Source: Podarcis muralis
Lineage: Eukaryota
DNA length: 64,000 bases
Assembly: GCF_964188315.1 (NCBI RefSeq)
Contig: NC_135667.1
Span: 5,828,001-5,892,000, forward strand
Direction of reading: 5' to 3'
Both the position numbers and the translations under genes were made by a program. Position 1 is the stretch's first letter. The number at the start of each line of letters is the position of its first letter. Shown here piece after piece: positions 26,617 through 62,509 of this stretch. The notes under the pieces are model-generated. The model saw only the letters and a program-made list of their open reading frames with translations. It was not told the DNA's origin and made no database searches.

Positions 26617-29600
26617 ATGAAGTCTGCCGCTTTTGTGACAGGTTGGTGACCTCTCTGCCCTCCTCAGATGGGGGAAACTCGCTTTCTATCTCACATTCAC
26701 ACCATTTCTCACTGCATCTCCACTTTGCTCTGTACTTCCAGCCTGTCTCCAGATCCTTCTTGTGAGATCAACCCACCCAGGTAAAGTTGACTTCCATTCT
26801 TGTTTGTTGTTGTTGTTGTTTAGTCGTTTAGTCGTGTCCGACTCTTCGTGACCCCCTGGACCAGAGCAGGCCAGGCACTCCTGTCTTCCACTGCCTCCCG
26901 CAGTTTGGTCAAACTCATGCTGGTAGCTTCGAGAACACTGTCCCACCATCTCGTCCTCTGTCGTCCCCTTCTCCTTGGGCCCTCCATCCTTCCCAACATC
27001 AGGGTCTTTTCCAGGGAGTCTTCTCTTCTCATGAGGTGGCCAAAGTCTTGGAGCCTCAGCTTCAGGATCTGTCCTTCCAGTGAGCACTCAGGGCTGATTT
27101 CCTTCAGAATGGAGAGGTTTGATCTTCTTGCCGTCCATGGGACTCTCAAGAGTCTCCTCCAGCACCATAATTCAAAAGCATCCATTCTTCGGCGATCAGC
27201 CTTCTTTATGGTCCAGCTCTCACTTCCATACATCACTACTGGGAAAACCATGGCTTTAACTATACGGACCTTTGTTGGCAAGGTGATGTCTCTGCTTTTT
27301 AAGATGCTGTCTAGGTTTGTTATTGCTTTTCTCCCAAGAAGCAGGCATCTTTTAATTTCGTGACTGCTGTCACCATCTGCAGTGATCATGGAGCCCAAGA
27401 AAGTAAAATCTCTCACTGCCTCCATTTCTTCCCCTTCTATTTGCCAGGAGGTGATGGGACCAGTGGCCATGATCTTGGTTTTTTTGATGTTGAGCTTCAG
27501 ACCATATTTTGTGCTCTCCTCTTTCACCCTCATTAAAAGGTTCTTTAATTCCTCCTCACTTTCTGCCATCAAGTTTGTGTCATCTGCATATCTGAGGTTG
27601 TTGATATTTCTTCCGGCAATCTTAATTCCGGCTTGGGATTCATCCAGCCCAGCCTTTCACATGATGAATTCTGCATATAAGTTAAATAAGCAGGGAGACA
27701 ATATACAGCCTTGCTGTACTCCTTTCCCAATTTTGAACCAATCAGTTGTTCCATATCCAGTTCTAACTGTAGCTTCTTGTCCCACATAGAGATTTCTCAG
27801 GAGACAGATGAGGTGATCAGGCACCCCCATTTCTTTAAGAACTTGCCACAGTTCCAAGGGATGTAAGGGTGTCACTTTTTTATTTTAAAAATGTCACACA
27901 CACCCCTTGTTACAAAATTAAATAATTAGACGTACATGGCTAACAAAGAATGGGTCACTAGGAGGGGTATAATACTAAACACATTATTTTTCAGTACACA
28001 ATAATCTGGTGGTTACAGTAAACTAGTATAATGAATTCGTCAGCAAATCAACTTGAGTAAGAGCGAGGTAATGAGTTGTGCTTGCTTACCTGCACTATAC
28101 TGCAATATATGTTGTATTTCTCATCCATGTGTTGTCTCATATGTATATTTAGTAAAATCACACCATGCAGTGTAAAAATTATACTGTTTGTTTCCCTCCT
28201 TTTCCGTTTTTGCGACAGCTTCTCCATTACAGATGTTTGTCAGACTGTGTTATACCGGTGATCAATATTCATTAATTGCAAGTTTCTCCAAGTTCTGGCT
28301 ATTACCATTCTAGCTGCCGTTAATAAATGTGTTATCAATTCCTTCTTCATTGGTCCATACCTGAAGTATATAAATTAAGTGGTCACTGGGGTTGTCTGAG
28401 CTGCTATCTGAGAGATCTCTTTAAAAACTTCCTTCCAAAGTAGTTCTATTTGTAGACATTCCTACCACATATGTTGGTATGTGCGTATAATTTGCACCCT
28501 CCTGCAACATAACGGAGGGCTATTGGGTTTTAAGGGAGGCACCTCAGTGTTAAATACCATCCATGCACAATTTTTAGAGAACTTCCTCAAGTCGCAGATT
28601 CAGGGCCGGATTTAGGTTTGACGAGGCCCTCAGCTACTAAAGGTAATGGGGCCCTTTATATGTCCAGCTGTCCTTTGTCAACAACAAATTGTCACTGTTT
28701 TTGTTGAATATATGCTATATGATAATTTATGGACCTCATAGGTATCTAATGTCTTTTACACATAACAAATAGGAGCCTACGCAACACAAAAGACTGTTGC
28801 TGTATGTAGGTTTTATTTTATTCATTTTTGTTTTTTATTTTGGAGATGTAAATCCTCTATTTTCCACCCACATTCTGATTCAATGTCTTTTTTTGTTGTT
28901 TGATTATCCATATTTTTTACCAGCATCTTGGTTTCCCCTTTCTTTACTTTAAAGCCAACCAATTTTCCAGATCTATTTATCTCTTTTGTCACGCCTAGTA
29001 TGCTCACTCTTGGTCGCTCTAAGTTTAACACAATGTCATCCGCAAATGCTTTTATTTTGTAATTTTGCTGGCCCACTGTTATTCCATGAATTTTATTATT
29101 CATCCTTATATTTTTTCTCCCTTTCTATGTTCCTTTCTATTTTCCACGGCTTGCCTTTTCCCTTTTGGCCACCACATGGCGCCAGAGACACTCCTGTACT
29201 TGACTGCTACTTATGTCTCACATCCCACAAGTAAGACATAGGAAGCGCTTTTCATAGTGTGTGCCTTCAGTTTCCTTCTCAGGGTGTCTTCGTCCTCTGG
29301 GTTTCATGCGCTTGTTTCCTGACTGGCTGGCTTTCCTCTCCTCCTCTGTGATCTCCAGGGATCCCACCTGCAGCAATTCTTTCCTTGGATCCCCAGCACC
29401 ACATCTACATGAAAGGTGAAAAGGTGACTCTCACTTGTTCGGCTCCTGGTGGTTTGAAGGTGGCAGGATACACCTTCTTCAAAGAACAGCAAGATCGGAC
29501 CTTCAAGGAGTTGCCCAATAGTGGAATGGGGCCTTATGAGATGTTCCGTGTCAATGAAGATACTGTTGGGAATTACAGCTGTGTATACTGGATCATGCCC

Positions 29601-32600
29601 TCAAGTGAGGAAATCTTTTCCTCACAGAGCAACCTTGTCTTTGTAGCCATGGCAGGTGAGCATCTTTGCATTTTACTGTTTGGCGTTGTCTCTTTCATTC
29701 GCAACACAAGAGGGAGAGGAGCATTGTGTTCCGAAAGGATTTCAGACTGCCTTGAAGGTAATAAGGTACAGTGGCACCTTGGCTCTCGAACTTAATCCGT
29801 TCCGGAAGTCCGTTCGACTACCAAAACCGTTCGAAAACCAAGGCACGGCTTCCAATTGGCTGCGGGAGCTTCCTGCACTCAATCTGAATCAGCGTCAGAC
29901 ATTTGGCTTCCAAAAAACGTTCACAAACCAGAACACTTACTTCCGGGTTTGTGGCGTTCAGGAGCCAATTTGTTCGTCGACTAAGCCGTTCGAGAACCAA
30001 GGTACCACTGTACAGTGGTGCCTCGGGTTACAGATGCTTCAGGCTACAGACGCTTCATGTTACAAACTCTACTAACCCCGAAATAGTACCTCGGGTTAAG
30101 AACTTTGCTTCAGGATGAGAACAGAACAGAAATCGCTCAGTGGCAGTGGGAGGCCCCATTAGCTAAAGTGGTGCTTCAGGTTAAGAACAGTTTCAGGTTA
30201 AGAACGGACCTCCCGAACGAATTAAGTTCTTAACTAGAGGTAAAGGTAAAGGTAAAGGGACCCCTGACCATTAGGTCCAGTCGTGGCCGACTCTGGGGTT
30301 GTGGCGCTCATCTCACTTTATTGACCGAGGGAGCCGGCGTACAGCTTCTGGGGTCATGGGGCCAGCATGACTAAGCCGCTTTTGGTGAACCAGAGCAGCA
30401 CACAGAAACGCCGTTTACCTTCCCGCCAGAGCGGTACCTATTTATCTACTTGCAATTGGACGTGCTTTCGAACTGCTAGGTTGGCAGGAGCAGGGACTGA
30501 GCAACGGGAGCTCACCCCGTCGTGGGGATTCGAACCGCCGACCTTCTGATCGGCAAGTCTTAGGCTCTGTGGTTTAACCCACAGCGCCACCCGCGTCCCA
30601 TGTCAGTCTCATTCAGGCGCTGACAAATTAGACCGCTTGCTTTACTAAAACCCAAAGTGATTAGCTGTTGTGGTGATAAACCACAAGAGTGAAGTTTTTG
30701 ATGGACAATTTTAATCCAGGCGCTCTTGTGACAATCTTGCAGCCACAGAGCTGGCAATCAACGAAGCAGAATGCCAGCGTCAGAGCCATGGCTTTTCATA
30801 GAGCTGTCCAGCCAAAATAAATGCATTCGCTCTAAAAGCCAAGTGGACCACAGTCTCTTAACCATTGAGCCAAGTCATTGTCCTCAATTGATTGCTTCTC
30901 CTTTGTGAACGATCACTCTAGATCCCCATCCCTCTCCGACACTGATAGTGGATCCTCCACCTGGAGTGGTGAACGAAGGAGACTCGCTAAACCTCACTTG
31001 CCTGGCCAACGAGGGGGAGACTGAGAAAAGATTCACTTTCTACAGGGATGGACTTGCGATAACCTTCAGCGATGAAGGATCTGTGTGGAGCTTCAGAGAA
31101 CCTGGAACTAACTTCTCAAATGCCTCTGTTAGCATCTTGAAAGCCAAGCTCAACCATAGTGGAGAATTTGCTTGCAGCTATGAGGAAGAAGTTAGTGGCC
31201 GGTGGGTGACCTCTTCCAGGAGCCAGACGGTGAAAATCATGGTGAAAGTCCCAGGTGAGTCATCTGGAGAAGGTTAGAGCTCAGTTTAGCAGAAGGATAT
31301 TCCATTTTTCTGTGTTGATTGAAGTATTAAGGGGGAGCCACTGGATGGGCCAGAAAAAGGGGGGAGATTGAGCAAAATATCTGTCATTCCCTGTAACCTG
31401 TAAATGTCATCTATTTTATTTCCTATGCCTTTTGTTGTTGTTTTGTTGTTTCGTTGTGTCCGACTCTTCATGACCCCCTGGATCAGAGCACGCCAGGCCC
31501 TCCTGTCTTCCACTGCCTCCCACAGTTTGGTCAAACTCATGCTGGTAGCTTCGAGAACACTGTCCCACCATCTCGTCCTCTGCTGTCCCCTTCTCCTTGT
31601 GCCCTCCATCTTTCCCAACATCAGGGACTTTCCAGGGAGTCTTCTCTTCTCATGAGGTGGCCAAAGTCTTGGAGCCTCAGCTTCAGGATCCGTCCTTCCA
31701 GTGAGCACTCAGGGCTGATTTCCTTCAGAATGGAGAGGTTTGATCTTCTTGCAGTCCATGGGACTCTCAAGAGTCTCCTCCAGCACCATAATTCAAAAGC
31801 ATCAATTCTTCGGCGATCAGCCTTCTTTATTGGTCCAGCTCTCACTTCCATACATCACCTCAGCCTTATTGTTGGGTAAGAGTGAGCAGTTCATATCTGT
31901 GATGGATTGAAAGGAGAGAGGGGGGGGTGTTATTTGCAGGGCTCAAACATCTCTCCTCTTCAACTTGTCTAGAAAAGTCTGACCCTAGTTACTTGTCCTG
32001 AAAGTTACTCTTCAGAAGTTGAATATTTATTTTGCATGACATTTTCTGCCTGTCTCGCATCCAAGGACAAGGAAGCCTTATTAAAAACACAATAGCCTAA
32101 CCATTTTTCCTTTCTTTTCTCAGATCCTTCTCCACCATCAGGTCCATCGCTGGCATTTGCGTATTTGGCAGTCCCCTTTGTGATTCTGATGATTCTCCTC
32201 ATCTTCTACTGTGGACAGAAAAAGACTGGTAGTTACGTGATGGGTTTTGAGGATACTGTGATGCTTGTGTGAATAATATTGTGTGTGCCTTTTCAGCCTT
32301 TGGCTCTCTTTTTCTCCTCTGTGGAAGCAGTGAAATGCCAGCAGGATTCTGAGCCAGAAGAACAGGAGGAGGAGGAGGAGGAGGAGGAGGAGGAGGAGGA
32401 ACTGCGTGATCTTGAAACAGGGGAGCCCCAAACAGCAGTTTGGCAGGAACACGACCAAGTAAGCGAGGAGATTCATGTGTAATATTAGTTACATCCATGA
32501 AAAACTGCCTAACTATTATGGAATGTGGTGCTACTGCAAGATGCAATGATAGCCTACAAATGAGCAAGCTCGTGGACAGAGATCTCTATTGTGTACTGCC

Positions 32601-33300
32601 TTTAGATGTCTTCTAAAAGTCAGGCAGTTGTTTATTTCCTTGACATCTGGTGGGAGGGCGTTCCACAGGGCAGGTGCCACCACCAAGAAGGCCCTCTGCT
32701 TGGTTCCCTGTAACCTCACTTCTCGCAGGGAGGGAACCACCAGAAGGCCCTCAGAGCTGGACCTCAGTTTCTGGGCAGAATGATGGGGGTGGAGATGCTC
32801 CTTCAGGCCTACTGGGCCTTTGAGGCCATTTAAGGCTTTCAAGGTCAGCAACAACACTTTGAATTGTGCTTGGAAACATACCTGGAGCCAATGATCAAGC
32901 ACTAGGAAGTGGGAGAAAAATTTCCTTCTCTGAGCTCCGGCTATGTAGGGTTGTAGGCCAACAGTAGGACATATGCTCTGCATGTAGAAGGTCTGAGGAT
33001 CAATCCCACCGGCCTCTTCAGGTAAGGCTGTGAAGGACTTAGAAAGCTGCTGCCAACCAGTGTCCACAATACCAGATAAGGTACCCAGGGAGGTTATTTG
33101 CCAGGCCCCTCCTGCTTTCAGTGCTGACCAACGGCACCCTCACATTCCTTCTGTTCCCACAGGACTCAACCATCACCTACGCCACCATCAAATTCTGCTT
33201 TGCTAAGTCTTGCTTAGGAAATGGGCTCCGACTGGTGGAAGAGGAGAAGGTGATGTACAGCGAGGTTCTGTTTCCACCTAAGAACAGAGGAAGAAAGTGA
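26617..33300 (+). CDS. Ig-superfamily inhibitory receptor 'gene A' (LILR/CHIR/FCRL-like; 2 Ig, TM, 2 ITIM; 355 aa)
   Basis: Exons 26617-26641, 26742-26780, 29359-29655, 30922-31254, 32124-32228, 32328-32458, 33163-33300 (1068 nt, phases 1-1-1-1-1-0, open frame). Signal MKSAAFVTACLQILLVRSTHP, two C2-type Ig exons, TM LAFAYLAVPFVILMILLIFYC, tail with ITYATI and VMYSEV; AATAAA at 33595. Confidence 0.85.
26803..27852 (-). mobile_element. BovB LINE, 5'-truncated (intron 2 of gene A)
   Basis: ORF 26820-27572 MAESEEELKNLLMRVKEES...GVTKSRTRLND; (CAA)n tail. Confidence 0.92.
29769..30240. mobile_element. two abutting TA-flanked mariner-type MITEs (29769-30010, 30013-30240)
   Basis: TIRs cagtggcaccttggctctcgaac / gttcgagaaccaaggtaccactg, shared TA, then a cagtggtgcctcggg copy. 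Confidence 0.8.
30241..30599 (-). mobile_element. Sauria SINE, full length
   Basis: (ACCTTT)n tail to gcgtccc head. Confidence 0.88.
31431..31858 (-). mobile_element. BovB LINE 3' fragment
   Basis: IKKADRRRIDAFELWCWRRLLRVPW on minus strand. Confidence 0.88.
32366..32401 (+). repeat. coding (GAG)11GAA microsatellite = 12 Glu in gene A tail
   Basis: Direct count in exon 32328-32458. Confidence 0.9.
32596..32905 (-). mobile_element. L2 LINE 3' fragment
   Basis: FKVLLLTLKALNG...QRAFLVVAPALWNALP on minus strand. Confidence 0.85.
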
Positions 33301-33702
33301 AGACATTGTGGAAAGGAAAGAGATTGTGGAGTTCTGAGTGGCTGCCAAAGGATTCTACATCGCCTGCCAGTTGGTTTATTGCTCTCAGCCAGGGCATGGC
33401 TGAAGGCACAGGAGGTGCCCACCTTGCGGAAGCTAAGCAGGTCCGGGTCTGGTCAGTGTCTGGGTGGGTGACTAGCTGGGAACCACAGATGTGCTGCTGT
33501 GATGATGGAAGAAAGGATGGGATGTAAATTTAAGAAAAGAAAACAAACAAACAAATACGTGTTGGTTCCACAGAAATCAACGCAGCTTCTATTCAATAAA
33601 GACAATTCAATTCTTACAAGTAGAATTCTGATGTGATTAAAGATTTGCAGTGTCATTTACAAACATGGTTGGGAAAGAGAAGAGGGCAGAACCATCTCAA
33701 AA

Positions 33703-34908: not shown

Positions 34909-34940
34909 TACGAAATAGTCAAAATAGACCTATAAGCAGA

Positions 34941-36379: not shown

Positions 36380-37182
36380 ATGAAATTTGCTGCTTTGATA
36401 ACAGGTTTGGGGCCTCTCTCTTGTTATAGACAAAATAGGGGGTTTGGCTTTTGCTGCCCTAGTCGCCAAGGTCGCCTAAGCCCATGATCCGTCAGAGATG
36501 AATGGATGGAGGGAAGACCTTGGTAACCAAAAACTCACTCCTTATCCTTATCCTTCTGGCGGTTCCCTCGCTGCGAGAAGCCAAGTTACAGGGAACCAGG
36601 CAGAGGGCCTTCTCAGTGGTGGTGCCCACCCTGTGGAACGCCCTCCCACCAGATGTCAAAGAGAAAAACAGCTACCAGACTTTTAGAAGACATCTGAAGG
36701 CAGCCTTGTTTAGGGAAGCTGTTAATGTTTAATAATGGGACGCGGGTGGCACTGTGGGTTAAACCACAGAGCCTAGGACTTGCCAATCAGGTCGGCGGTT
36801 CGAATCCCCGTGACGGGGTGAGCTCCCGTTGCTCGGTCCCTGCTCCTGCCCACCTAGCAGTTCGAAAGCACGTCAAAGTGCAAGTAGATAAATAGGTACC
36901 GCTCCCGCGGGAAGGTAAATAGCATTTCCGTGCGCTGCTCTGGTTCGCCAGAAGCGGCTTAGTCATGCTGGCCACATGACCTGGAAGCTGTACGCTGGCT
37001 CCCTCGGCCAATAAAGCGAGATGAGCGCCGCAACACCAGAGTCGGCCACGACTGGACCTAATGGTCAGGGGTCCCTTTACCTTTACCTAATGTTGAATAG
37101 GTTATTGTATTTTAATATTTTGTTGGAAGCCGCCCAGAGTGGCTGGGGAGACCCAGCCAGATGGGTGGGGTATAAATAAATT

Positions 37183-37227
<45 letters not shown>

Positions 37228-40200
37228 TGCATCTTATGACTGACAGGCTTGGACTCAGCCACACTGGCAAAGGCCAAGATCAAGAGAGACCAAGCCTAAG
37301 AGGGCCACGGATTCCAGCCACCCTGAAGTAAGACGTCAAAAGCCAGGGGAAATCCGACGCTGCGTGCTCATTCCTGTCAATCTGACACCGAGGAATCTGA
37401 GCTCTACCCACTTTTCTGATTTCCGGGTCAGCTGCCACAAGTCTGCCCTAACCACTAGGCAGTCTTGATATTCTTTTTCTTTGGCGATCTCTCGTAGCTG
37501 AAAACATTGGCAGCATTAAGATAAATTCAACAGTGTAAATAAGTTTTGACAGATGCAATCATGGAATACTGAATGGTACAGTTTTTTATGTAAAATATGC
37601 AGGGATTTATGATAAGCAAAATGAACCATAGGAAGTTCGCAGATGATACAACGGTGGTTGATTTAATCACGGCTGGAGAGGGGGAGGCGGTCTATAGGAA
37701 GGAAGTTGAGCAGTTGGGGGAGTGGTGCAGGAAAAACAACTTACTCCTTAACTTAAAGAAAACAAAAGAGATCTTTGTGGACTTTAGGAAATGTAAATTG
37801 AATATTCAGCCACTTATTATTGAGGGGAAGTGCGTGGAACAGGTCTCGGTGTTTCGATTTCTGGGAATGGAGTTGAGAGACGACCTAACCTGGGGAGAAA
37901 ACAGCAAAGACTTGATGAAGAGAGCACAGCAGAGGTTATATTTTCTGAGAATCCTCCGGAAAAACAATCTCAGAGGACCTGTTGATGGCATTTTACCATT
38001 GTACTGTTGAGAGTGTATTAACTTATGGTCTGTGTGTGTGGTTTGGAAGCTGCACGGCCAGGGAAAAAACAACGCTGTCCAGGGTTGTAAAGACTGCGGA
38101 GAGAATAATTGGGTGCACTCTTCCCACTTTGGATCAATTCTATGCTTCCAGGTGCCATAAGAAAGCTGTAGAGATAGCACAGGATAGTGCGCACCCCAGA
38201 AATGATCTCTTTCAGCTTCTGCCTTCTGGAAGAAGGTACAGGGTTATAAAGACCAGGACTAGCCACCTGAGAAACAGTTTCTATGCAAATGCAATTCTGG
38301 TTCTAAACGCAGCATAAGGAGTCTCTATAGTATATTGTATTTTAAAATGTGGTTTCAGAGTTTTTAGGGGTTTTTGAATGTTTTTTGTAGTTTTTCAGTT
38401 TCATTGTTGTGTATGGGACAATGACAATAAAGATATTGTATATCGAAAGGGAAGAAGGGAAGTCACTGATATTTTAATGAATATTTTAAATTGTAAAACA
38501 GAACATTTAATAATGGTGTGATTGTGAGATAGAGGGTGAGTTTATATAAACTCTATCTCACAAACCACACCATTTCTCATGACATCTCTCCTTTGCTCTT
38601 CACTTTTAGCCTGTCTGTGGATCCTCCTTTGGAGTTCAGTCCATGCAGGTAAAGTTGGTTTCCATTTTTGTTTAATTGATTTTACTAAGCAGTTGCACGG
38701 GATGGCCGGGGTGTCAATTTTGTATATGGTTAAATTCACAGCTCAGGTGCATCTGACAGCAGCAAAAGGCAGAAATCCAGTAGGTCAAATTTTCCACAAT
38801 GGGAGATGTGGCTATAAGCAAGGTATCACCTGTTGGCTTTTTGTTGCTGCTGAGTGTGTCGAACCAAACGTTCTGGAAGGCCGGCAAATGCCACCTTGCT
38901 AGTCAAGAAAACCCCAAAACTAAATGGTAGTCGTTGCAAGAATGAACACATACCGTATTTTTCGCTCTATAAGACACACTTTTCCCCCTTCAAAAATTAA
39001 GGGGAAATGTGTGTGCATCTTATGGAGCGAATGCAGGCTCCTTGGCTTCAGCGATAGCAACGCGAAGCCTCCGAAGCGCAGAGGGAGAGCTGCCCCTGCG
39101 AGCTCCTCCGGAGGCTTCATGCTGCTTTCGCTGAAGCCACCTGAAGCCCCCGGAGTGCAGCAGGAGTTCCCGCTGCACTCCGAAGGCTTGCGGATAGCCG
39201 CCTGAAGCCTGGAGAGCGAGAGGGGTCAGTGCACACCGATCCCTCTTGCTCTCCAGGCTTCGCTTCTCTGGAGAGGCGCTAAACAGCTGTCCCTCTCTGC
39301 ACAGCGCTCCTTCAGCGAAGTGGGAGAAGAAATGGAAGGGGCTCCGTTTCTCCTGCCGCTTCGCTGAAGGGGCACTGAGCAGAGAGGGGGAGAATTATTA
39401 TTTTTCCTGTTCTCTGCCTCCTATGGTCCGGTGCGTCCTATAGAGCGAAAAGTACGGTGTGTGTTTATATTCCTTTGCTTCGGTCTTTCCCCAAATAAGA
39501 TACCCTCTTTATTCTGTGCTCCTTCGCTTCTCAGAGCATCTTTGCCCTCTTGGTTTCATGCGTTTGTTTCCTGACTGGCTGGCTTACCTCTCCTCCTCTG
39601 TGATCTCCAGGGATCCCACCTGCAGCAATTCTTTCCTTGGATCCCCAGCACCACATCTACATGAAAGGTGAAAAGGTGATTCTCACTTGTTCGGCTCCTG
39701 TTGGCCCGAAGGTGGCAGGATACACCTTCTTCAAAGAACAGCAAGATCGGACCTTCAAGGAGTTGCCCAATAGTGGAATGGGGCCTTATGAGATGTTCCA
39801 TGTCAATGAAGATACCGTTGGGAATTACAGCTGTGTGTACTGGATCATGCCCTCAGGACAGGAAATCTGGTCCCCACAGAGCAACCTTGTCTTTGTAGCC
39901 ATGGCAGGTGAGCATCTTTGCATTTTACTGTTTGGTGTTGTCTCTTTCATTCGCAACACGAGAGAGAGAGGAGCACTGTGTTCTGAAAGAAGGATTTCAA
40001 TTTTTAAATATATAAATTTATTTATTTGGTTTTTCAGACTAAAATTTTACACTCACATCCAACATAGAAACAAGATTCCAAAAATCGCCTGGACTTCCCT
40101 CTCCCCTTTTGTTAATCCTATTCTTAATCATTTTTTAACAATCTTTTACCTCTCCATTGTGTCCAAAATTCGCCATTAAACTACAAGTGTTATTCCAAGT

Positions 40201-46417: not shown

Positions 46418-49400
46418 ATGAAGTCTGCTGCTTTGGTGACAGGTTGGTGACCTCTCTGCCCAACTCAGATTGGAAATTTGCCGTCTATCTCACATTCACA
46501 CTGCATCTCTCCTTTGCTCTTCACTTCCAGTCTGTCTCCAGATCCTCATCGGGAGATCAGTCCAGGCAGGTAAAGCGGATTTCCGTTCTTCTTTCAACTT
46601 TTCTGATAGGAGACAGAAGCTCTATGGGATGTAGGAGTGTCAGATTTTGCATGATTGGGTGGATGGCGGCTAACAGATTGAGGCTGAATCCTGACAAGAC
46701 AGAAGTACTGTTTTGGGGGACAGAGGGCGGGCAGGTGTGGAGGACTCCCTGGTTCTGAATGGGGTAACTGTGCCCCTGAAGGACCAGGTGTCCAGCCTGG
46801 GAGTCATTTTGGACTCACAGCTGTCCATGGAGGCGCAGGTCAATTCTGTGTCCAGGGCAGCTGTCTACCAGCTCCATCTGGTATGCAGGATGAGACCCTC
46901 CCTGCCTGCGGACTGTCTCACCAGAGTGGGGCATGCTCTGGTTATCTCCCACTTGACATACATGGCAACATTTTGTTGCAGGCCACCCTGGTCTCCTGCC
47001 CTGCCACACTTGGGCGGTCTTACGTTTTGCATTTTGAAGGGAAATGGGGCATCGCCAAACAAGGCTTGCTTCTTATTCCTTATCTGTTTATTTGCTTCTC
47101 AGACCCCCTTCGTCCTCCGTTCTTCTCTGTGTCCCCAAAGCTTGACACCTATAGCAGTGGGGAGATTGTGAACTTCACATGCTCTGCTCCTGAAAACCTT
47201 CTCATGTCGAGGGTTCTCTTTCGGAAGGACCGATGGCTGTTGTATGGCTACAGGCCCCCTTCTCCTCTGGCCTCCTTAACGCACATGAAGCGCTTGTTTC
47301 CTCGACACAGCGGGGATCATTTTTGCACGTACCAAGCTGCGGAATCGAGCTGGAACATCTCATCCCCCAAAAGCAGAAGGATCAGGATTTCAGTGATGGG
47401 TGAGGCCTTAAAAAACGCATTATTCCCTTGGAAGATGAAGGGGAAGGACGCCCTAGAATGTCCCAGGTTCAATCCCCGTTGTCTCCTGGTAGGTCTGGGA
47501 AACTCTCCTTCCTGAGGACCTAGAGAGAGATGCTGCCAGTCAGTGTATACAATGCTAGCAGGACCACTGGTCTGGCGTGGTTATAAGCCAGCGGGTGACA
47601 TTCTTAGATACCAGGGTTACCTCGGAAGTGGGAATCTTCTTGATATCTGCTCAGACTGCAATGTGGGTCTTTTTTTCTTGGACGATAGCGCTGTAACCCT
47701 TAGTCAAACATGAATCCAGTTACAGATAGGTAGCCGTGTTGGTCTGCCATAGTCAAAACAAGAATCGCAAGACAGAGAAACCAGTAGGAGAACACTTCAA
47801 TCTCCCAGGACATTCTATACAAGATCTCAAAGTAGCTGTTTTACTACAAAGGAATTTCAGAAATAGACTGGAAAGGGAAGCTGCTGAATTGCAACTCATT
47901 ACCAAACTTAAAACCATGGAGAGACCTGGTCTGAACAAAGACATTGGATTCTTATCTCATTATACATGACAAAGCCATTTTTCACCATCTCACCCCTTAC
48001 TTTTTCCTGTAAGACCTATTGCAGTCGTTAAGAGTCGTCAACAGGCTCATCACAGCTATCTGCCAATCACCCATTCCCACCACCCTTCTGAGTAATACCC
48101 CTCCCCACCTTCTCACTATATAGAAGGATCTGGCAACTTCTGTTTCAGTGTATCTGAAGAAGTGTGCATGCACACGAAAGCTCATACCAAGAACTAACTT
48201 AGTTGGTCTTTAAGGTGCTACTGGAAGGAATTTTTTTTGTTTCAAACATGAATACTACTCATGAGTAAGAAACCAGGCAAGGGGCCTAGGGGCAAGCTGG
48301 AAAGCTCCGACACATCACCCTCATATCAGTTACTTCTTTTATAATAATTTTTGTTGGTTTTACAATCTGGTTTTAAATTCACAGAAAAAATCCAATAAAA
48401 AAATACAGAATTCTCGGACCCTCCCTTTTGTGGAGTCCACAAATAACCCTTTTCACTGTAAATCATATTATCCTCCAAAAAACTCTATTTTCTCCTATAG
48501 TTCTTTTCACATTGCAAGTGTTATTTCAACCTTGGTAATGTTTTTAACCGTTTACAGTGTTCTGTGAAATATATTACAATCTGCCCCCTGATATAGCCCT
48601 GAAAAATTATGGAACGCTTCACAAATTTGCGTGAAAAAAATTATAGCCCTGAAAAAATATGGAACGCTTCACAAATTTGCGTGTCATCCTTGCACAGGGG
48701 CCATGCTAATTTTTCCTGTATCATTCCAATTTTAGTACTGCTAGGTTGGCAGGAGCAGGGACCAAGCAACGGGAGCTCACCCCGTCGTGGGGATTAGAAC
48801 CGCCAACCTTCTGATCGGCAAGTCCTAGGCTCTGTGGTTTAACCCACAGCGCCACCCGCGTCCCTTGACATGAGTAGTACAGATCCTCAAACAGGGATCA
48901 AGAGTTTAGCCAGCTAACATTTACCTTCCCGGACACTGCACATTTCCCCTGAATGTTGCGCAACACAGGCTCCTGATCTTCTACTCTCCCCTCCTGAAGT
49001 CCAAGTGGGGAATTCATGAACCCACAACTCTCTGTTGGCAACCCTGCCTGGATTAACCCGATTTAGTTATGGCTTGCCCCTTAAAACCTCCGTGAGCCAC
49101 AGACTCCTAATCACTTAGCCATTGTACTCATTTTCCTTTACGGACGGCTCCTGTAGCTCCTCCTCCTGCCCCGGTGCTGACAGTGGCTCCTCCGTCTGGA
49201 GTGGTGAAGGAAGGGGGATTCCTGCGCCTCACTTGCTCGGCCTTTGGCAGCGACGCAGAGCAAAGGTTCCATTTCTACAAGGATGGGGTCAAGATTTCCT
49301 CCAGCAGTGAAGAGTCTCTGGCGGACTCCGGAGAACCCAGGAATGCCTTCTTGAACGCCTCTGCAGACATCCTGGTCCAAGTCACAGCCAGCATCTACAC

Positions 49401-52400: not shown

Positions 52401-55400
52401 ATCATGTCTCCCTGGAGCCCAACAGTGAATGTCACAGGTGAGCCATGCCCTAATATTTTACAAACATTAATTCATTTCAATCCAAATGGGACCCCTGACC
52501 ATTAGGTCCAGTGGTGGCCGACTCTGGGCTTGCGGCGCTCATCTCGCTTTACTGGCCGAGGGAGCAGATTCCGGGTCGTGTGGCCAGCATAACTAAGCCG
52601 CTTCTGGTGAACCAGAGCAGTGCACGGAAACGCCGTTTACCTTCCCGCCAGAGCGGTACCTATTTATCTACTTGCACTGCCATGCTTTCGAACTGCTAGG
52701 TTGGCAGGATCAGGGACCGAGCAATGGGAGCTCACCCCATCACGGGGATTCAAACCGCTGACCTTCTGATCGGCATGCCCTAGGCTCTGTGGTTTAACCC
52801 ACAGCGCCACCCGCGTCCCTTGACATGAGTAGTACAGATCCCCAAAGGGGATTAAGAGTTTAGCCCGCTAACATTTACCTTCCCGGACACTGCACATTTC
52901 CCCTGAATGTTGCGCAACACATGCTGCTGATCTTCTCCTCTCCCCTCCTGAAGTCCAAGTGGGGAATTCATGAACCCACGACTCTCTGTTGACAACTGTG
53001 CCTGTATGAACCCGATTTAGTTATGGCTTGCCCCTTAAAACCTCCGTGAGCCACAGACTCCTAATCACTTAGCCATTGTACTCATTTTCCTTTACGGACG
53101 GCTCCTGTAGCTCCTCCTCCTGCCCCGGTGCTGACAGTGGATCCTCCGTCTGGAGTGGTGAATGAAGGGGGATTCCTGCGCCTCACTTGCTCGGCCTTTG
53201 GCAGCGACGCAGAGCAAAGGTTCCATTTCTACAAGGATGGGGTCAAGATTTCCTCCAGCAGTGAAGAGTCTCTGGCGGACTCCGGAGAACCCAGGAATGC
53301 CTTCTCAAACGCCTCTGCAAACATCCTGGTCCAAGTCACAGCCAGCATCCACACTGGGGGATTTGCTTGCAGGTATGAGCAGAAACTGAGCAGCCGATGG
53401 ATCATGTCTCCCTGGAGCCAAACGGTGAATGTCACAGGTGAGCCATGCCCCAATATTTTACAAATATTAATTCATAACAAACCAAATTACATACCCATAA
53501 TTAGAGATTTCTCCAAATTTCTGGATTTTCCATCTTCCCCTCCGTGGGTCCTATTGTACACCCTCTTAACTGCATATTTTTCCACAATCCGTATTTTATA
53601 TCTTCCCATCTTGTCCATAATATTAGTTACATTGCAAGTGTTATTAAAATCCTGCTAGGGTTTTCACCTGTTACAGTGATCACCTAGATAAATTATAAAT
53701 TTCCCCCTTTCTTTATTGAAGTTTAGTTCTCCTTGGTTCCTGAGTCTTCCAGTCAGTTTTGCCATTTCGGCATAGTCCAACAGTTTTATTTGCCTTTCTT
53801 CTCTGGTAGGGACACAATTTTCTTTCCATCTCTAGGCTAGCAGCATCCATGTGGCTGTTGTCGCATACATATAATGTCTTTTCTGTTCCTTTGGTATATC
53901 GGTATACCAATATACTGATATGTTTTTAACTTCACTGAATTACTGTTACTGCGTCTTCAACAACAACGGCTGCAATGGAGTCTCTCCTCCCTTTATTCGT
54001 GTTGTTGTTGTTGTTGTTGTTGAGTCGTTTTGTCGTGTTGGACTCTTCGTGACCCCCTGGACCAGAGCACACCAGGCCCTCCTGTCTTCCACTACCTCCC
54101 GCAGTTTGGTCAAACGCATGCTGGTAGCTCCGAGAACACTGTCCAACCATCTCGTCCTCTGCCGTCCCCTTCTCCTTGTGCCCTCCATCTTTCCCAACAT
54201 CAGGGTCTTTTCCAGGGAGTTTTCTCTTCCAATGAGGTGGCCAAAGTATTGGAGCCTCAGCTTCAGGATCTGTCCTTCCAGTGAGCACTCAGGGCTGATT
54301 TCCTTCAGAATGGATACATTTGATCTTCTTCCAGTCCATGGGACTCTCAAGAGTCTCCTCCAGCACCAGAATTCAAAAGCATCCATTCTTCGGCGATCAG
54401 CCTTCTTTATGGTCCAGCTCTCACTTCCATACATCACTACTGGGAAAACCATGGCTTTAACTATATGGATCTTTGTTGCCAAGGTGATGTCTCTGCTTTT
54501 TAAGATGCTGTCTACGTTTGTCACTGCTTTTCTCCCAAGGAGCAGGCGTCTTTTAATTTCGTGACTGCTGTCAGCATCTGCAGTGATCATGGAGCCCAAG
54601 AAAGTGAAATCTCTCACTGCCTCCATTTCTTCCCCTTATATTTGCCAGGACCCCTTATTCATACCAACAGCCAAATCCCCTTCTTTCCTTTCTGCAGTTT
54701 GGGCACCAAATTGCTCTTCGTCACCCCTGCTATATGCACGCTGGGCGATTCCACTGGTGATCCTGATGGTCCCTCTTGCTTTTTACTGCACGAGAAGAAA
54801 GAGAGGTAGGTGATGCTGGAGACTGTGGGCCTCTCATATCATTGGCCCAGTATACCTGAAGGAGCAACTCCACCTCCATCACTCAGCCCAGACACTGAGG
54901 TCCAGCTCCGAGGGCCTTCTGGTGGTTCACTCCCTGCGAGAAGCCAAGTTACAGGAAACCAGGCAGAGGGCCTTCTCGGTGGTGGCACCCACCCTCTGGA
55001 ACGTCCTCCCATCAGATGTCAAGGAAATAAACTACTATCTGAATTTTAGAAGGCATCTGAAGGCAGCCCTGTTTAGGGAAGTTTTTGATGTTTGATCATG
55101 TTTTTAATATTCTGTTGGAAGCCACCCAGAGTGGCTGGGTAACCCAAAAGGTGGGCAGGGTATACATAAATTATTATTATCATTATTATTATTACTACTA
55201 CTACTACTACTACTACCTATGTATGTAGAAGCCTGCTTAAGATCTTTAGGGGATAATGCTCCTCTCTGTGTCGTGAGAGTGGTGGCCGTGAGAGCAGTGT
55301 TGGTTAAAAGCAACAAAACCAAGCATTTGTTTTGTCTTCCTTCGTATTGGATGTGGTTAGGGTGTGGGAGGGAGCCTTGCCTGTGTCTGTCCTGTGGAAC

Positions 55401-56929
55401 TACCAGCCTCAAGAGGTTTGTTTTCAGGTCTCACCACCTTTCTTCTCTTTTCTCTTTTCATTTCCACTTTGGAAGCGTTGAAATCTGAGCAGGAAAACAA
55501 GGAAGAAGCAAATTCTGAGTATGTTGAAATGTTCAGCGCCACTAGGAAGCCTCAGAGGTAACGGCAACTAATGCTAGTATAACACTGATGTGATGTGTGT
55601 GTGTCTTCATAATTTCTTATTTATTTAAAGCATTTCTTCCAAAAAGTGGCTGACCAAAATAACAATGGTGGTGGCACAAAAGGAGGAAGGGAGGAGCGAA
55701 ATAGCCAGCTCAGGCAGCAGTTCAGTTCTTAAAGTTTTGAACATAGTTGGAGGCGAAGAGCACCCACAAACCATGCAAGGAGTTTCCAGAGGGGAGGAAA
55801 ACTTGAACCCAGAGCCTGGCAACCTGGAAATGCAGGAGAGACTTATCAGTCAAGAGAGGGACAACGTCCTGTTGGCTGGGAGATAAAAGGGTGAAAGGAG
55901 ACTGGAGGAACAGGCAGCGGGGGGTGTCCCAGGCTGAAAAAGGAGCCAGAGACCCCACAGGAAGAAGCATAGAATTGTAGAATTGGAAGGGACCCGGTGG
56001 ATCATCTAGTCCAGCCCCCTGCAATGCAGGAATATTCAGCTGCCCCTTACGGGGATCAAACCTGCAACCTTGGCATCATCAGCACCACGCTCTAGCCAAC
56101 TGAGCTATCCAGGAAGAAGGACCAAAAGGACAAGTTTGGGGGTTTCAGATAAGGAGGGGGAAATGATTGGCATGTTGGAGAGAAGGGAAGATGTCTGAAA
56201 GAGATGGGGTGGCTGGGACAGGGATAGAGCGATGGGGCAGGGAAAGGTGGAGGCAGAAGGGGAGAAGGGAGCAGATTCGTTGAGTTGCTTGACCACTCAC
56301 CTTTGCCAAGAGCTGCTGTGTGTATTCTCTGTGTAAAAAAACTGGGAGAGAAATTGTGGAACCATTTAAAAACGAACCTTTGATAATACATTAACTGGCT
56401 CCCTCCCCCACAATCTCTATTTAAGGAAATAGAAACTGAGCTATGGAATTGGCTGCTACAGGATGTGGTTTAGATGCCCTTTGAAAAGAGGTACATTTGT
56501 GAAGAATATTCTGCCAAAGCATTTTAGTCATGACAGCTAAATAGGTCTTCACTGTGCAGAAGCAGTCTACCTCTGAATTGCTGTGCACTGGAGATAAGGA
56601 AAAGAGGAGGGTGGCCTGTTTGTGAGTTGCCCAGGAGTGTCCAGCTGGCTGCTGTCAAAACTTGATGATGCGAACCTTCAATTTGCTCCCAACAGCCTTG
56701 GGGGGATCATCATTCTTTGAACATGTCCCTCAATTTCCTTCTCCTTTTCAGGACTCAGATGCCTTTTACTGCCTTGCCGCCCCCTGCTCTGCCTCAGCCC
56801 CCAATATCGCAATTATGGATGGAGAGCGGAGCCAAACTGGCCGAAGACCAGGAGGAAGGTCTCTACAACTACATTCCCCTTCAGGGCAAGAAGAGAGCAG
56901 ACCGATACAGAGATTCTGAAGAAGAATGA
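46418..56929 (+). CDS. Ig-superfamily receptor 'gene C' (5 Ig, TM Arg, YxxM / Pro-rich / YxxI tail; 678 aa if all exons are used)
   Basis: Exons 46418-46442, 46531-46569, 47103-47399, 49157-49483, 51110-51436, 52111-52437, 53111-53437, 54698-54805, 55476-55557, 56752-56929 (2037 nt, open). Signal MKSAALVTVCLQILIGRSVQA; TM LLYARWAIPLVILMVPLAFYC; last-exon choice less certain. Confidence 0.78.
46641..46946 (+). mobile_element. L2 LINE internal fragment
   Basis: GWMAANRLRLNPDKTEVLF...LGVILDSQLSMEAQVNSV. Confidence 0.85.
47716..48241 (+). mobile_element. Penelope-like element remnant (GIY-YIG end + pseudo-LTR)
   Basis: KPVGEHFNLPGHSIQDLKVAVL...GLNKDIGFLSHYT*; flanked by direct repeat tcaaacatgaat (47704-47715, 48242-48253). 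Confidence 0.85.
48150..48187 (+). ncRNA. minimal type-I hammerhead ribozyme motif of the Penelope pseudo-LTR
   Basis: GTAT-CTGAAGA-A-GTGTGCATGCACAC-GAAA-GC-TC-ATAC: conserved core, stem II GTGTG/CACAC, stem I GTAT/ATAC. Confidence 0.75.
48652..48738 (-). pseudogene. RNU6: U6 snRNA retrocopy (5'-truncated), duplicate of the U6/L1 chimera
   Basis: aaaatatggaacgcttcacaaatttgcgtgtcatccttgcacaggggccatgctaat = reverse complement of U6; local ~50-bp tandem duplication at 48594-48633. Confidence 0.88.
49952..50355 (-). pseudogene. RNU6: U6 snRNA / L1 3'-end chimeric retrocopy (U6 part 50248-50355)
   Basis: Full-length diverged U6 joined at its T-tract to an L1 ORF2 end (NKDWGEIVTSLTEHCKLLKTLPRLK*) and 3'UTR; 13-bp repeat caccctcatacca at 49939-49951 and 50356-50368; no upstream TATA/PSE. 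Confidence 0.82.
50764..50972 (+). mobile_element. tRNA-derived CORE/MIR-like SINE
   Basis: A-box gtgttgtaatggttaagagt, B-box ctgggttcgcgtc, actcacctcacagagtgtttgt core, (CTT)n tail. Confidence 0.7.
53470..53915 (-). mobile_element. L1 LINE 3' fragment
   Basis: Homologous to 40010-40600 on minus strand. Confidence 0.7.
53999..54650 (-). mobile_element. BovB LINE, 5'-truncated
   Basis: ORF 53946-54626 EAVRDFTFLGSMITAD...GVTKSPTRQND; (CAA)n tail. Confidence 0.92.
54832..55215 (+). mobile_element. L2 LINE 3' fragment
   Basis: gaggtccagctccgagggccttctgg...ccacccagagtggctgg with (TTA/CTA)n tail. Confidence 0.82.
55968..56110 (-). mobile_element. Squam3-like tRNA-derived SINE with CR1-type tail
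   Basis: Reverse complement GGATAGCTCAGTTGGCTAGAGCGTGG...GGTTTGATCCCC...ATTCTACAATTCTATG. Confidence 0.75.
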
Positions 56930-59085: not shown

Positions 59086-62000
59086 TCACACAGCACCTGC
59101 CCTTTCCACTTCTGGGCCATCTCTTTCCTGCACAGCCTCGTGGTGGCTTTGTTGAGGATGGAAGAGAAGATCGCTGTAGAGGACCTCTTCGTCTTTTGCC
59201 GAGATGGGATCGTTCTTCAGCGTTGGTTCAGAGGCAGTCACAGTCGGTGGGGAGGCAATGGTGGCATAGGTGACGTCTGAGCTCTGAGGATGGAGAGGGA
59301 AACGGAGGGTGACCCACGGTTCAAGCTGGAAAGCAGAAATGGCTCAGGAACAGTCCATTGAGAAGGAGGTTTCTTTCCCAGTGTACCCCCCAGGGCTCTC
59401 TGCAAAATATACTTCAAACGGGATGACCAGCAAAATACCGTATTTTTCAATCTATAAGACGCCCCCAGGTATAAGATGCCCCCTATTTTGGGGGACTCAA
59501 ATATAAGAAAATGGGGGGAGATGTATCCATGTATAAGACACCCCCTAATTTTTGACATTATTTTTAGGGGGGGACCTAGTGTTCTAACACGGAAAAATAT
59601 GGTAATTTCTGGCACACACATAAGAACTTAAGAATATACACCAGGGGTCAGCAACCTTTTCCAGCCGTGGGCCAGTCCACCATCCCTCAGACCTTGTGGG
59701 GGGTCCAGACTATATATTTTTTTTCGGGGGGGGATGAACAAATTCCTATGCCCCACAAATAACCCAGAGATGCATTTAAAATAAAAGGACACATTCTACT
59801 CATGTAAAAACATGCTGATTCCCGGACTGTCCACGGGCCGGATTGAGAAGGCGATTGGGCTGGATTCAGCCCCCAGGCCTTAGGTTGCCTATCCCTGATA
59901 TACACCTTTAGGCGCCAGGCAAAAACATTCCTCTTTAACCAGGTCTTTGGCCTATTGACACCCAATGCCCTTTTAAATGTGTTGTGGGAGGTGGGATTAC
60001 TGGTTTCTTATTTTTATCATGCATTTTTTTGTTATTTTATACTGTACAGTGGTACCTCGGGTTAAGTACTTAATTCATTCTGGAGGTCCGTTCTTAACCT
60101 GAATCTGTTCTTAACCTGAAGCACCACTTTAGCTAATGGGGCCTCCTGCTGCTGCCGTGCCACTGCTGAGCGATTTCTGTTCTCATCCTGAAGCAAAGTT
60201 CTTAACCTGAGGTACTATTTCTGAGTTTGCGGAGTCTGTAACCTGAAGCGTCTGTAACCTGAAGCGTCTGTGACCCGAGGTACCACTGTAATTTGATGTT
60301 GTGAACCGCCCTGCGATCTGTGGATGTAGGGCAGTATACAAATAATAATAGAATAATAGATTTGCAGGGCTAGGCTAGTGGCCCATCTAGTCCAACATCC
60401 TGTTCTCGCAGTAGCCAACCTGATGCCTGTGGGAAACCCAGGAGCAGCATCCGAGCACAAGAGCAAAACTCTCCCCTCCTGTAGCTTCTAGCAACTGGTG
60501 CTCAGAAGCTTTGCTGCCTCCAGCTGTGGAGGCAGACAATAGCCACTGTGGTGAGCGGCCGCAACGGATGTGGCTGAATCAGTTCGTAAGTTCTGTTTTC
60601 TGTTTCTGACCTTGGCCTGACATATGTACCTGGGAACCTCACAGCCTATCGGGTAATCATCCCTTTTTGTTTATCACCCGGAGTAGTTTGGAAAGGACGC
60701 AGTTGGTGCTGTGGTCTAAACCACTGAGCCTCTTGGGCTTGCCGGTCGGAATCTTGGGCTTGCCGATCGAATCCCCGCGACAGAGTGAACTCCCGTTGCT
60801 CTGTCCCTTCTCCTGCCAACCTAGCAGTTCGAAAGCACGCCATTGCAAGTAGATAAATAGGTACCGCTGTGGCGGGAAGGTAAACGGCATTTCCATGCGC
60901 TCTGGCACTTGTCACAGTGTTTCCATTGCACCAGAATCGGTTTAGTCCTGCTGGCCACATGACCCGGAAAGCTGTCTGTGAACAAACACCAGCTCCCTTG
61001 GCCTGAAAGCGAGATGAGCGCCGCAACCCCAGTCGCCTTTGACTGGACATAACCATCCAGGTGTCCTTTACCTTTTTTTTTTTTTTGCCTTACCTTAGTT
61101 TGTGGGGTGGGGGATAAGGGCTGTAGCTGAGTGGCAAGGTATCTGCACTGCATGCAACAGCTCCCAGGTTTGATCCCTGATGGTATCTTCAGGTAGACTC
61201 CAGTCTGAAACCCTCAAGAGCCACTACCAGTCAATGCAGATAATACTGAGCTAGGCTGGCCAATGACTTGGTATAAAGGAGCTTCTTGTGTTCCTTTGTC
61301 CATGGATGGCCAATTTAGCAGTTATAGACACAAGAGGTTCACGAGTTCTTTTTTTGGTTTTGGTTTCCATTCAAGTGGCCATCCCCACTCCTGGCTGTAG
61401 CTAATTCTCTAAGGACAGCTACACACTTGTTTACTTTCTCACCTGGACGGAAGACCAATCATTACAATTCCTAAGCTTCTTTGAAAGCGATCCTGACCCA
61501 TAAAACTGGTTTCAGTAAGAGGATGGACTCATTTCCCGAGCTCAGATGGAAGCAAAATGCAAACCTAAACCTTTCTACTTACTTTGACCTGAAAGTCTGT
61601 CTTTTGGGGTACCAACAACCCAAACATGTCTTGACTTGTTTCCTCCTTGCTTTCCTTTGTCTCAGATGCTAGCTGATATTTTGATGTGCCCAAGGCAAAA
61701 AGAACTAGAGAGAGAGAGAAAGGGAGTGAAAAGTTAAAAGTATGGTTATGCACCATCCTTATCTCTGATCTGTGAGAGACTCCACAAATTCCTGCACTGA
61801 TCCAGGACTCTGTTTCCTTGGAATGAAGGTCAGCAGAGACTGTGGTGTCTCTAGGGTATATGGTTTTATTTACACACATAAACAACCAGAGCATAGGATG
61901 GAAGGTATCATAGTACTGACATCTCCATAGATCTTGCTTCCCCTTTAGCTTTCCAGGACAGCCCCCAAACCCAGAGCAAACATGTCTCTCTCTTAGAGAT

Positions 62001-62509
62001 GGGAAAGCCTGGGGAAAACCCAGAAAAATTGGAAAGAAACCTGTCCCCAACCCCAATTTTTCTGCCCCCCCCCCCCGGGGGGGGGGGGGGCTTTCTCCAG
62101 CTTCCAGCTCTCACACAACTCTGCCTATTGTTCTCCTATGTAGGTAGGTAAGGAGCTGGAAGAAAAGCCAACCCATCTATTCTATGACACAGAGCGTCTT
62201 TTTTCGTTATGCTAAATTGTGGTACTTAACTAGCCAGCCCAAGTCATTAACTTAACAAAGTGGGCTGGTTTCCACTTACAGATTGTATTATTATGGGATT
62301 TTTAATAGCAGTGCATAGTTAATCTATGGAACTAGGCCCAAAGGGAGGCAGGCTCTTCTTCTGGGGTTTAAGTTGGATGGTCCCAAGGGCCCATCACTTA
62401 CTGCCTTTCTTTCTCCAACAATAGTACGCAAACACGACTGCCGGGATCAGAAGCAGACTAGCCCACCATACATGCCCCATTGATGTAGCAGATGAATCTG
62501 GCAACTGAG
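59086..62509 (-). CDS. Ig-superfamily inhibitory receptor 'gene D', TM and cytoplasmic exons (5' part outside window)
   Basis: Minus-strand exons 62509-62402 (TM VWWASLLLIPAVVFAYYCW-RKKG, GTAAGT donor), 61704-61583, optional 61478-61443, terminal 59283-59086 (SSDVTYATI...EEVLYSDLL...GAV*); phases 1-1-0-0 consistent. Confidence 0.82.
59642..59897. mobile_element. hAT-type MITE
   Basis: TIRs caggggtcagcaacc / ggttgcctatccctg; perfect 8-bp TSD atatacac. Confidence 0.88.
60047..60288. mobile_element. Tc1/mariner-superfamily MITE (cagtggtacc family)
   Basis: TIRs with TA TSD. Confidence 0.85.
60695..61075 (+). mobile_element. Sauria SINE (older subfamily)
   Basis: ggacgcagttggtgctgtggtctaaaccactgagcc...gtcctttacc tail. 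Confidence 0.8.
61118..61295 (+). mobile_element. old tRNA(Ala)-headed SINE
   Basis: gggctgtagctgagtgg...ggtttgatccctg...ccagtcaatgcagataatactgagctag; related fragments at ~22222, ~33040, ~47455. Confidence 0.6.

Follow-up and report, generated by a model that had tools for sequence, protein, structure and literature searches.

Paired inhibitory and activating immunoglobulin (Ig)-like receptors have been described in mammals, chicken, Xenopus, and teleosts, and those of reptiles have so far consisted of inconsistent automatic annotations only. A stretch of the genome of the lizard Podarcis muralis raises the question of what such receptors look like in a reptile, and of the receptor family to which they belong. 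This stretch, referred to here as the window, comprises 64,000 nt of NC_135667.1 (GCF_964188315.1; positions 5,828,001-5,892,000, forward strand) and is vertebrate DNA with no run of N. Between 26.6 and 62.5 kb, the window carries nine plus-strand Ig-domain exons, all of which are open, in phase 1, and 297-333 nt long. They are part of a cluster of four genes, three in tandem on the plus strand (A, B, and C) and one, partial within the window, on the minus strand (D); all positions below are those of the window.

The four genes probably encode type I Ig-like immunoregulatory receptors from a sauropsid-wide branch of the superfamily that unites the Fc receptors (FcR) and FCRL proteins with the receptors of the leukocyte receptor complex (LRC). 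The products of A and D would be inhibitory, that of B adaptor-coupled, and that of C activating or dual in function. Membrane topology, coupling to adaptors and phosphatases, and cell type are predictions from sequence.

Gene models and transcripts

The gene models draw on alignments among the paralogues, on canonical splice signals, and on proteins related to the products. Introns are of the AG/GT type throughout the four models, and the modelled exons (22 of 22) are open with canonical splice sites, giving open frames of 355 aa for A, 266 aa for B, 678 aa for C, and a partial 130 aa for D. The curated Pfam cut-off (Ig_2, Ig_3, or ig) is reached by eight of the nine Ig exons, the exception being the first Ig exon of C, with a weak Ig_2 match. 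A, B, and C share a leader that is split into a 25-nt and a 39-nt exon with GT donors and AG acceptors, and that aligns among all three genes. This split leader had been proposed in an initial annotation of the sequence together with the Ig exons of about 300 nt in phase 1, and both are confirmed in A, B, and C by splice signals and alignment. The C-strand motifs quoted there (YTFFKE, FTFYRDG, and FHFFKDG, to which four copies of FHFYKDG can be added) and the immunoreceptor tyrosine-based inhibitory motifs (ITIMs) all lie where it had placed them. The division that it drew also stands: A and D combine an uncharged transmembrane (TM) segment with an ITIM pair, whereas B and C have a TM Arg within a YxR motif (YLR in B, YAR in C). 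As is typical of the ITIM class, the cytoplasmic tails of A and D each contain two [SIVL]xYxx[ILV] motifs with the tyrosines about 25-30 residues apart. The cluster of four is borne out for the tandem A, B, and C and the convergent D, but the Ig exons of D are outside the window.

Gene A encodes two Ig domains. The first leader exon (26617..26641, plus strand, 25 nt) begins with ATG, encodes MKSAAFVT plus 1 nt, ends at a GT donor, and aligns with the leaders of B and C; an identical leader is present in the P. lilfordi protein P0161. The leader mini-exon (26742..26780, 39 nt, phase 1) is conserved in B and C. It is followed by an Ig exon of the distal domain type (29359..29655, 297 nt, phase 1; Pfam Ig_2, 1.9e-9), an Ig exon of the proximal domain type (30922..31254, 333 nt; Pfam Ig_2/Ig_3), and a 105-nt exon encoding the stalk and the uncharged TM segment (32124..32228; LAFAYLAVPFVILMILLIFYC). 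The first cytoplasmic exon (32328..32458) runs from phase 1 to phase 0 and is homologous to an exon in C, D, geckos, and snakes; these internal exons are all bounded by AG/GT. It includes a poly-Glu tract of about 15 residues encoded by a (GAG)n microsatellite (32353-32407), the length of which likely differs among alleles. The last coding exon (33163..33300, stop TGA) carries ITYATI (33172, residue 314) and VMYSEV (33250, residue 340) with the tyrosines 26 residues apart, and this tail is conserved in squamate relatives. Across 467 nt that cover the first Ig exon and its flanking intron (29272-29737 versus 39523-39989), A and B are 94% identical, whereas the second Ig exons are only about 75% identical at the nucleotide level. 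This difference suggests gene conversion or a recent duplication of part of the gene, either of which may have kept the distal domains of A and B alike.

Gene B likewise encodes two Ig domains, but its protein ends straight after the TM segment. Its plus-strand exons are a 25-nt leader exon (36380..36404), which the orthologues of P. raffonei and Zootoca also have, a 39-nt mini-exon (38610..38648), two Ig exons (39611..39907, Pfam Ig_2; 43030..43350, Pfam Ig_3), and a last exon (44152..44422). The coding part of the last exon (44152-44270) comprises the stalk and the TM segment (GYLRLAP...), which forms the protein end, GYLRLAPTLLILMVPLAFC, and is closed by a TGA at 44268-44270; the remainder is 3' untranslated region (UTR). 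Arg251 lies about 15 residues ahead of the TM end, and there is no cytoplasmic tail.

Junctions were checked in RNA reads for genes A and B, in runs whose source tissues are not stated. A search with the second Ig exon of B found RNA runs that contain 58-85% of the words in this exon. Three joints, 38648>39611 (runs X9, X4, and X26), 39907>43030, and 43350>44152, all GT..AG, are present in contigs of three runs from two studies. Contigs of 1.1-1.2 kb in two of the runs, and shorter ones in the third, are colinear with the genome past the TGA and reach at least position 44422 within the 3' UTR. Because spliced RNA contigs join these exons and pass the TGA, the mini-exon, both Ig exons, and the tail-less end of B are real. 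For Zootoca, P. raffonei, and P. lilfordi, independent models of the B orthologue have exactly the split leader of the initial annotation, retain YLR with its Arg, and stop after PLAFC. In the contigs from X9 and X26, 18 positions of the last exon (44181-44383) depart from the window sequence, the changes including L252S, L256F, and some in the UTR. These two substitutions make the TM segment identical there to that of the Zootoca orthologue while Arg251 and the stop are retained, and the variant is a deeply divergent allele or lineage.

Gene C is the largest of the set, with a layout of one plus four Ig domains. The plus-strand leader exons (46418..46442, 25 nt, aligning with the leaders of A and B; 46531..46569, 39 nt, AG/GT) precede an Ig exon of a divergent distal type (47103..47399, AG/GT) that matches protein P0162. 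Four tandem Ig exons of the proximal type follow (49157-49483, 51110-51436, 52111-52437, and 53111-53437), each 327 nt, AG/GT, in phase 1, and open. They result from a fourfold tandem amplification (48242-53487) in which the repeated unit measures 1-2 kb. Its copies are 92-97% identical to one another, each with an intact Ig exon, and the four domains form a 100/100 clade in the maximum likelihood (ML) tree described below. A P. raffonei model, P0160, has one such domain only. The stalk and TM exon (54698..54805; LLYARWAIPLVILMVPLAFYC, with LLYARWAIPL...) has a counterpart, including the Arg, in the P. lilfordi protein P0167, and the first cytoplasmic exon (55476..55557, 82 nt, AG/GT) is 100% identical to P0167. 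The long tail has no ITIM, and contains SEYVEM in the first cytoplasmic exon, with YVEM as a YxxM motif, and in the last coding exon (56752..56929, stop TGA at 56927) a degenerate GLYNYI. Over 55476-56929, C departs from A and D in reading frame: its first cytoplasmic exon ends in phase 2 rather than phase 0, and the last exon therefore starts one base off the ITIM frame. Read in the frame of A and D, it gives DSDAFYCLA where A has DSTITYATI. The tail version without ITIMs also occurs in P0075, a further P. muralis gene.

Gene D is represented by three minus-strand exons (62509-59086): a 108-nt stalk and uncharged TM exon (62402..62509, AG/GT; VWWASLLLIPAVVFAYYCW), an 86-nt cytoplasmic exon (61583..61668, AG/GT) that fits in phase and is homologous to the matching exon in A and C, and the last coding exon (59086..59283). 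The latter encodes VTYATI (59257) and VLYSDL (59167), with the tyrosines 30 residues apart, and ends with a TGA at 59086-59088. Searches by tblastn and pattern scans found no Ig exon of D within the window. The ectodomain is probably an annotated minus-strand Ig gene of 256 aa that lies about 6 kb past the window end.

The genes are not hidden from annotation; they are already predicted by NCBI RefSeq, poorly modelled and uncharacterised. XP_077773937.1 ("Fc receptor-like protein 5", 277 aa, P. muralis) is 100% identical to the second Ig exon and the TM exon of A, but its first exon is a different one and the model continues past the TM donor, which leaves out the ITIM tail. XP_077773938.1 (1378 aa, "uncharacterized") is 100% identical to the Ig exons of B; its gene model spans 107 kb and joins the Ig exons of B and C to three further Ig domains, a mucin-like stalk, and a TM segment outside the window, the fusion partner being a gene about 80 kb away. 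Automatic names of the relatives include FCRL5, A1BG-like, IGSF1-like, OSCAR, FcgRII-like, and FceRIa, and those in the ESM Atlas are similarly mixed (FCRL5, A1BG, and FCAR). Among the papers searched, none was found that describes these genes, nor one that specifically describes LRC or FCRL genes of squamates.

Family range and relation to FcR and LRC

The second Ig domain of A has 246 matches at E<=1e-10 among 1.84 billion representative proteins. Named relatives come from lacertids, a skink, an amphisbaenian, geckos, snakes, many turtles, alligators, and birds, and weaker matches from shark, ray, and arthropod multi-Ig proteins (arthropod Dscam). Homologue searches with P0158 and with a two-domain alignment returned reptile proteins and a few carp proteins only, the latter weak and named NCAM-like. 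The membrane-proximal domain type is 42-50% identical in turtles, alligators, and birds. An ML tree of this domain type was built from squamate, turtle, crocodilian, and bird domains only. In this tree all squamate domains fall on one side (support 72/45) and those of turtles, crocodilians, and birds on the other, and the second domain of A is sister to the lacertid lineage of the second domain of B (96/86). Given these relatives and this tree, the family is not squamate-specific, contrary to the initial annotation, and that label fits the local clade only. By these comparisons the family is at least sauropsid-wide with lineage-specific expansions, of which the squamate genes would be one. Squamate tails share a common architecture, with KK, A.K..QE..KEE..(D/E)Y..(M/T), and (D/E)S.VTYA.[ILV] ... 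EE.VLYS.[ILV], and the two-ITIM tail is conserved in geckos, snakes, and turtles.

The genes are predicted to belong to the FcR/FCRL-LRC superfamily. Their position within it is unsettled, with a modest lean toward FcR/FCRL over the LRC proper, and the scores for all families are in the twilight zone, at about 10-30 bits per domain. For the first Ig domain alone, FCRL5 is matched at 2e-16; the best-matching domains are D1 of FcgRIIb (13.3 bits) and those of FCRL5 (about 10-11 bits each, 63 bits in total), and no LILR or KIR match appears at E<=1 against PDB profiles. A two-domain profile gives 47-52 bits for the two-domain FcgRII and FceRIa (51-52 for FcgRIIa), 63 for FcgRI, 70 for FCRL4, and 210 for FCRL5; the three- and four-domain KIR3DL1 and LILRB chains score 52-57, and the top 60 of this search include no two-domain LRC chain. 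In Foldseek searches of the PDB and of Swiss-Prot alike, the leading matches are FcgRIIb/c/a, at 21-23% identity, and the E-value of the FcgRIIb match (profile/Foldseek) is 3.5e-12. A comparison of the interdomain hinge by AlphaFold and Foldseek yields template-modelling scores of 0.34-0.47 for FcR and LRC families alike. The bird relatives P0016 and P0044 match FCRL5/FCRL4 and LILRB, with no match to the solved chicken CHIR-AB1 at E<=1e-5. Turtle and alligator relatives have a TM segment of the GGSFFLINGLIFL type, which resembles the classical FcR motif (M/L)Fxx(D/N)TxL. The window genes lack this motif, and also the NxxR motif of the Xenopus TM1 receptors, B having GYLR and C having LYAR.

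Leader geometry and the flanking genes in view are typical of neither family. The second leader exon of LRC genes is 36 nt long, a rule for which no citable source was found among the papers searched. The 25/39-nt leader of the window genes follows neither this rule nor the 30/21 rule of FcR genes, and leader exons of 30 and 21 nt are found in FCRL1-6, FcgRI, and FCRLB (PMC2413239). No LRC neighbours were seen in the approximately 150 kb viewed. The flanks, a cluster of histone H1, H3, H2B, and H4 genes and a CIDE-N gene, are the hallmark of neither an FcR nor an LRC locus.

Proposed signalling and competing explanations

After tyrosine phosphorylation, the tandem ITIMs of A and D would most likely recruit phosphatases of the SHP-1/SHP-2 type, and activation would be damped. 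The TM Arg of B most likely pairs with an adaptor bearing an immunoreceptor tyrosine-based activation motif (ITAM), such as FcR-gamma, and would signal through it like the tail-less TM1 class of Xenopus receptors. C is probably an activating or dual-function form; its TM Arg is followed by a long tail in which both ITIMs are lost and the YxxM motif is kept. The proposal of the initial annotation that the cluster comprises paired inhibitory and activating receptors is well supported by sequence, in the contrast between ITIM-bearing and TM-Arg forms; non-mammalian FcR-like families show this contrast as well. In Xenopus, TM1 receptors have a TM Arg, are tail-less, and encode TM and tail in one exon; their association with FcR-gamma has been demonstrated experimentally and is required for surface expression (PMC2413239).

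Several observations weigh against this interpretation of the four genes, and they are considered here alongside the explanations that they favor. The YxR of B and C places the Arg outside the NxxR context that is common to the Xenopus and mammalian partners of FcR-gamma, and paralogues have a Cys at the position of the Arg of C. Snake relatives combine an Arg near the TM start, in a juxtamembrane position, with ITIM tails, and the Arg alone is therefore no proof of activation. The C-terminus of B, moreover, is hydrophobic and has no basic anchor, so that a glycosylphosphatidylinositol (GPI) signal is possible. It is conceivable, albeit improbable, that B is a GPI-anchored or signalling-incompetent decoy, comparable to FcgRIIIB as opposed to FcgRIIIA, rather than an adaptor-coupled receptor. 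Its protein ends right after a 15-residue hydrophobic stretch without basic stop-transfer residues, small residues (S-S-A, S, and G) lie upstream of this stretch, and its Arg is not part of an NxxR motif. Nevertheless, the Arg is conserved in three Podarcis species, in Zootoca, and in the divergent allele although neighboring residues vary; about 16 residues, a long spacer, separate the hydrophobic stretch from the best omega-like site; and tail-less, Arg-bearing TM segments characterize the FcR-gamma-coupled class in Xenopus.

A further doubt concerns whether all four genes function. While the predicted junctions of B are found in spliced RNA, no matching joint was found for A in four runs, in which exon depth is zero or near zero and coverage is confined to repeats. 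Low-depth contigs (3-5x) from runs X1, X3, and X5 (labelled 'RNA?') are colinear with the genome over the 3' exons of A (31922-32601 and 32913-33399). They span the TM donor and the last acceptor unspliced, and may represent pre-mRNA, carried-over DNA, or an isoform with read-through as in the RefSeq model ending in GSYVMGFEDTVMLV. B might then be the only working gene, with A, C, and/or D being unexpressed or decaying copies of a kind common in fast-turnover receptor clusters. The missing spliced reads of A would fit this explanation, as would the very recent fourfold exon amplification and frame-shifted tail of C and the truncated or chimeric RefSeq models of A and C. We nonetheless consider it unlikely: the modelled exons are open without exception, gecko, snake, and turtle proteins have conserved counterparts of the tail exons, and a P. 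lilfordi model uses the TM and tail exons of C. Immune receptors are also tissue-restricted, and the tissues behind the runs are not stated.

The twilight-zone scores weigh against the proposed family placement as well, and two further results count against it. The best single-domain PDB match of the proximal domain (second Ig domain of A) is D3 of LILRB1, at 12.3 bits over a whole-domain alignment, and the predicted D1-D2 geometry is nearer to LRC chains and FCRLA (root-mean-square deviation [rmsd] 7-12 Å) than to FcgRs (17-19 Å). Both results would suit the view of the initial annotation that the cluster is the squamate counterpart of the LRC, of the LILR/KIR/PIR/CHIR type and specific to squamates. 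A second leader exon of 39 nt, which is near 36 nt and unlike the 21 nt of FcR genes, agrees with this view, as do the Phe in place of Trp in the C strand, the C-x-Y ... W..S..S pattern following the second Cys, the A1BG-like, IGSF1-like, and OSCAR names of some relatives, and the grouping of squamate domains on one side of the tree. However, the exact 36-nt length is not found, per-domain profile scores and Foldseek E-values favor FcgRII, FceRIa, and FCRL, bird members match FCRL5/4 and not CHIR-AB1, and the flanking genes are not LRC neighbors; in addition, relatives occur in turtles, crocodilians, and birds. Guselnikov and Taranin have warned that an LRC name given to a non-mammalian gene by annotation frequently misleads (PMC6557307). 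An LRC identity restricted to squamates is a tentative option, and we think it rather less probable than an affinity with FcR/FCRL. There is also a small chance that the genes form a separate sauropsid lineage outside both the LRC and the FcR proper: an ancestral mosaic with an FcR-like distal domain, an LRC-like proximal domain, an in-between leader geometry, and a locus of its own between the histone cluster and the CIDE gene. If so, it would be a living intermediate by which a shared origin of FcR and LRC receptors could be tested directly.

Surroundings of the cluster and known receptor systems

A cluster of replication-type histone genes (8526-21397) lies directly upstream of the receptors. 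It comprises histone H1 (8526-9128, minus strand), H3 (13705-14115, plus strand), H2B (14974-15360, minus strand), H4 (16809-17120, minus strand), and a second copy of H2B (21017-21397, minus strand), and there is no H2A among the listed open reading frames of at least 80 aa. Human FCGR1A adjoins the HIST2 cluster; this likeness is a lead only, not a test, and no paper in support of such a synteny was found among those searched. The receptor cluster runs on past the window, over about 68.8-152 kb in window coordinates, and its downstream boundary is the gene with the CIDE-N domain. Beyond the window, it contains the minus-strand Ig gene of 256 aa, two small genes without Pfam matches, P0075 (a family member of 366 aa), and the distal exons of the 1378-aa model. 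Repeats occupy 26686-28000, 31286-31880, 35640-35990, and 53920-54650 and fill many introns; they are fragments (93-98% alike) of one retroelement bearing a reverse transcriptase, and several SINE-like repeats. These supplied nearly all of the 'RNA' words matched by a first, long query.

The proposed FcR/FCRL-LRC superfamily receptors of the lizard share several aspects of their organization with the Xenopus FcR-like genes, or XFL (Guselnikov et al. 2008, PMC2413239). Both form large clusters of intermingled genes with phase-1 Ig exons and a two-exon leader; both include one class in which a TM Arg goes with little tail or none and a single exon encodes TM and tail, and another in which the TM is uncharged and the Yxx[LIV] motifs have exons of their own; and in both there are paired forms with similar ectodomains. 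In contrast to the lizard genes, XFL have NxxR rather than YxR as the TM1 motif, some of their leaders are 30/21 rather than 25/39, and FcR-gamma association is experimental, whereas that of the lizard receptors is a prediction. Mammalian FCRL1-6, FcgRII, FcgRIII, and FceRIa are the top profile and Foldseek matches and have the two-domain D1-D2 layout of A and B. FcgRIII and FceRIa resemble B in that TM and end are in one exon, and FcgRIIB and the FCRLs carry ITIMs. They differ in leader geometry (30/21 versus 25/39) and in the classical TM motif, which is absent in the window genes; identity is 19-23%, the predicted hinge is not superposable (rmsd as given above), and the lizard receptors are not known to bind Ig.

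LILR/PIR, KIR, and chicken CHIR of the LRC are like the lizard genes in that ITIM forms are paired with TM-Arg forms and the second leader exon is long. Other common traits are the F in the C strand, the C-x-Y pattern, and VTYAxI-type ITIMs about 30 residues apart. C, with its TM Arg and long tail, recalls the bifunctional CHIR-AB and KIR2DL4 types. On the other side are per-domain profile scores lower than those of FcRs, bird relatives that are not CHIR-like, flanks that are not LRC-like, and a second leader exon of 36 rather than 39 nt. The LRC-type label originally given to the cluster is not established. Teleost LITRs also have paired stimulatory and inhibitory forms with similar distal Ig domains, and their Ig domains are distantly related to both FcR/FCRL and LRC receptors (PMC4810170, PMC7404264). 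A similar split signal is seen in the lizard, in which the distal domain is nearest to FcgRII/FCRL5 and the proximal domain to D3 of LILRB1; this likeness is one of pattern.

The locus yields a set of curated exon-level models, one of them proven by transcripts, for reptile receptors of this kind. The models expose concrete annotation errors, namely the missed ITIM tail of A and the fusion of B, C, and a distant gene into one. The even split of similarity between FcR and LRC makes the genes useful material on the unsettled relation of the two families, and the models are a starting point for seeking reptile Fc (IgY/IgM) or MHC-type ligands.

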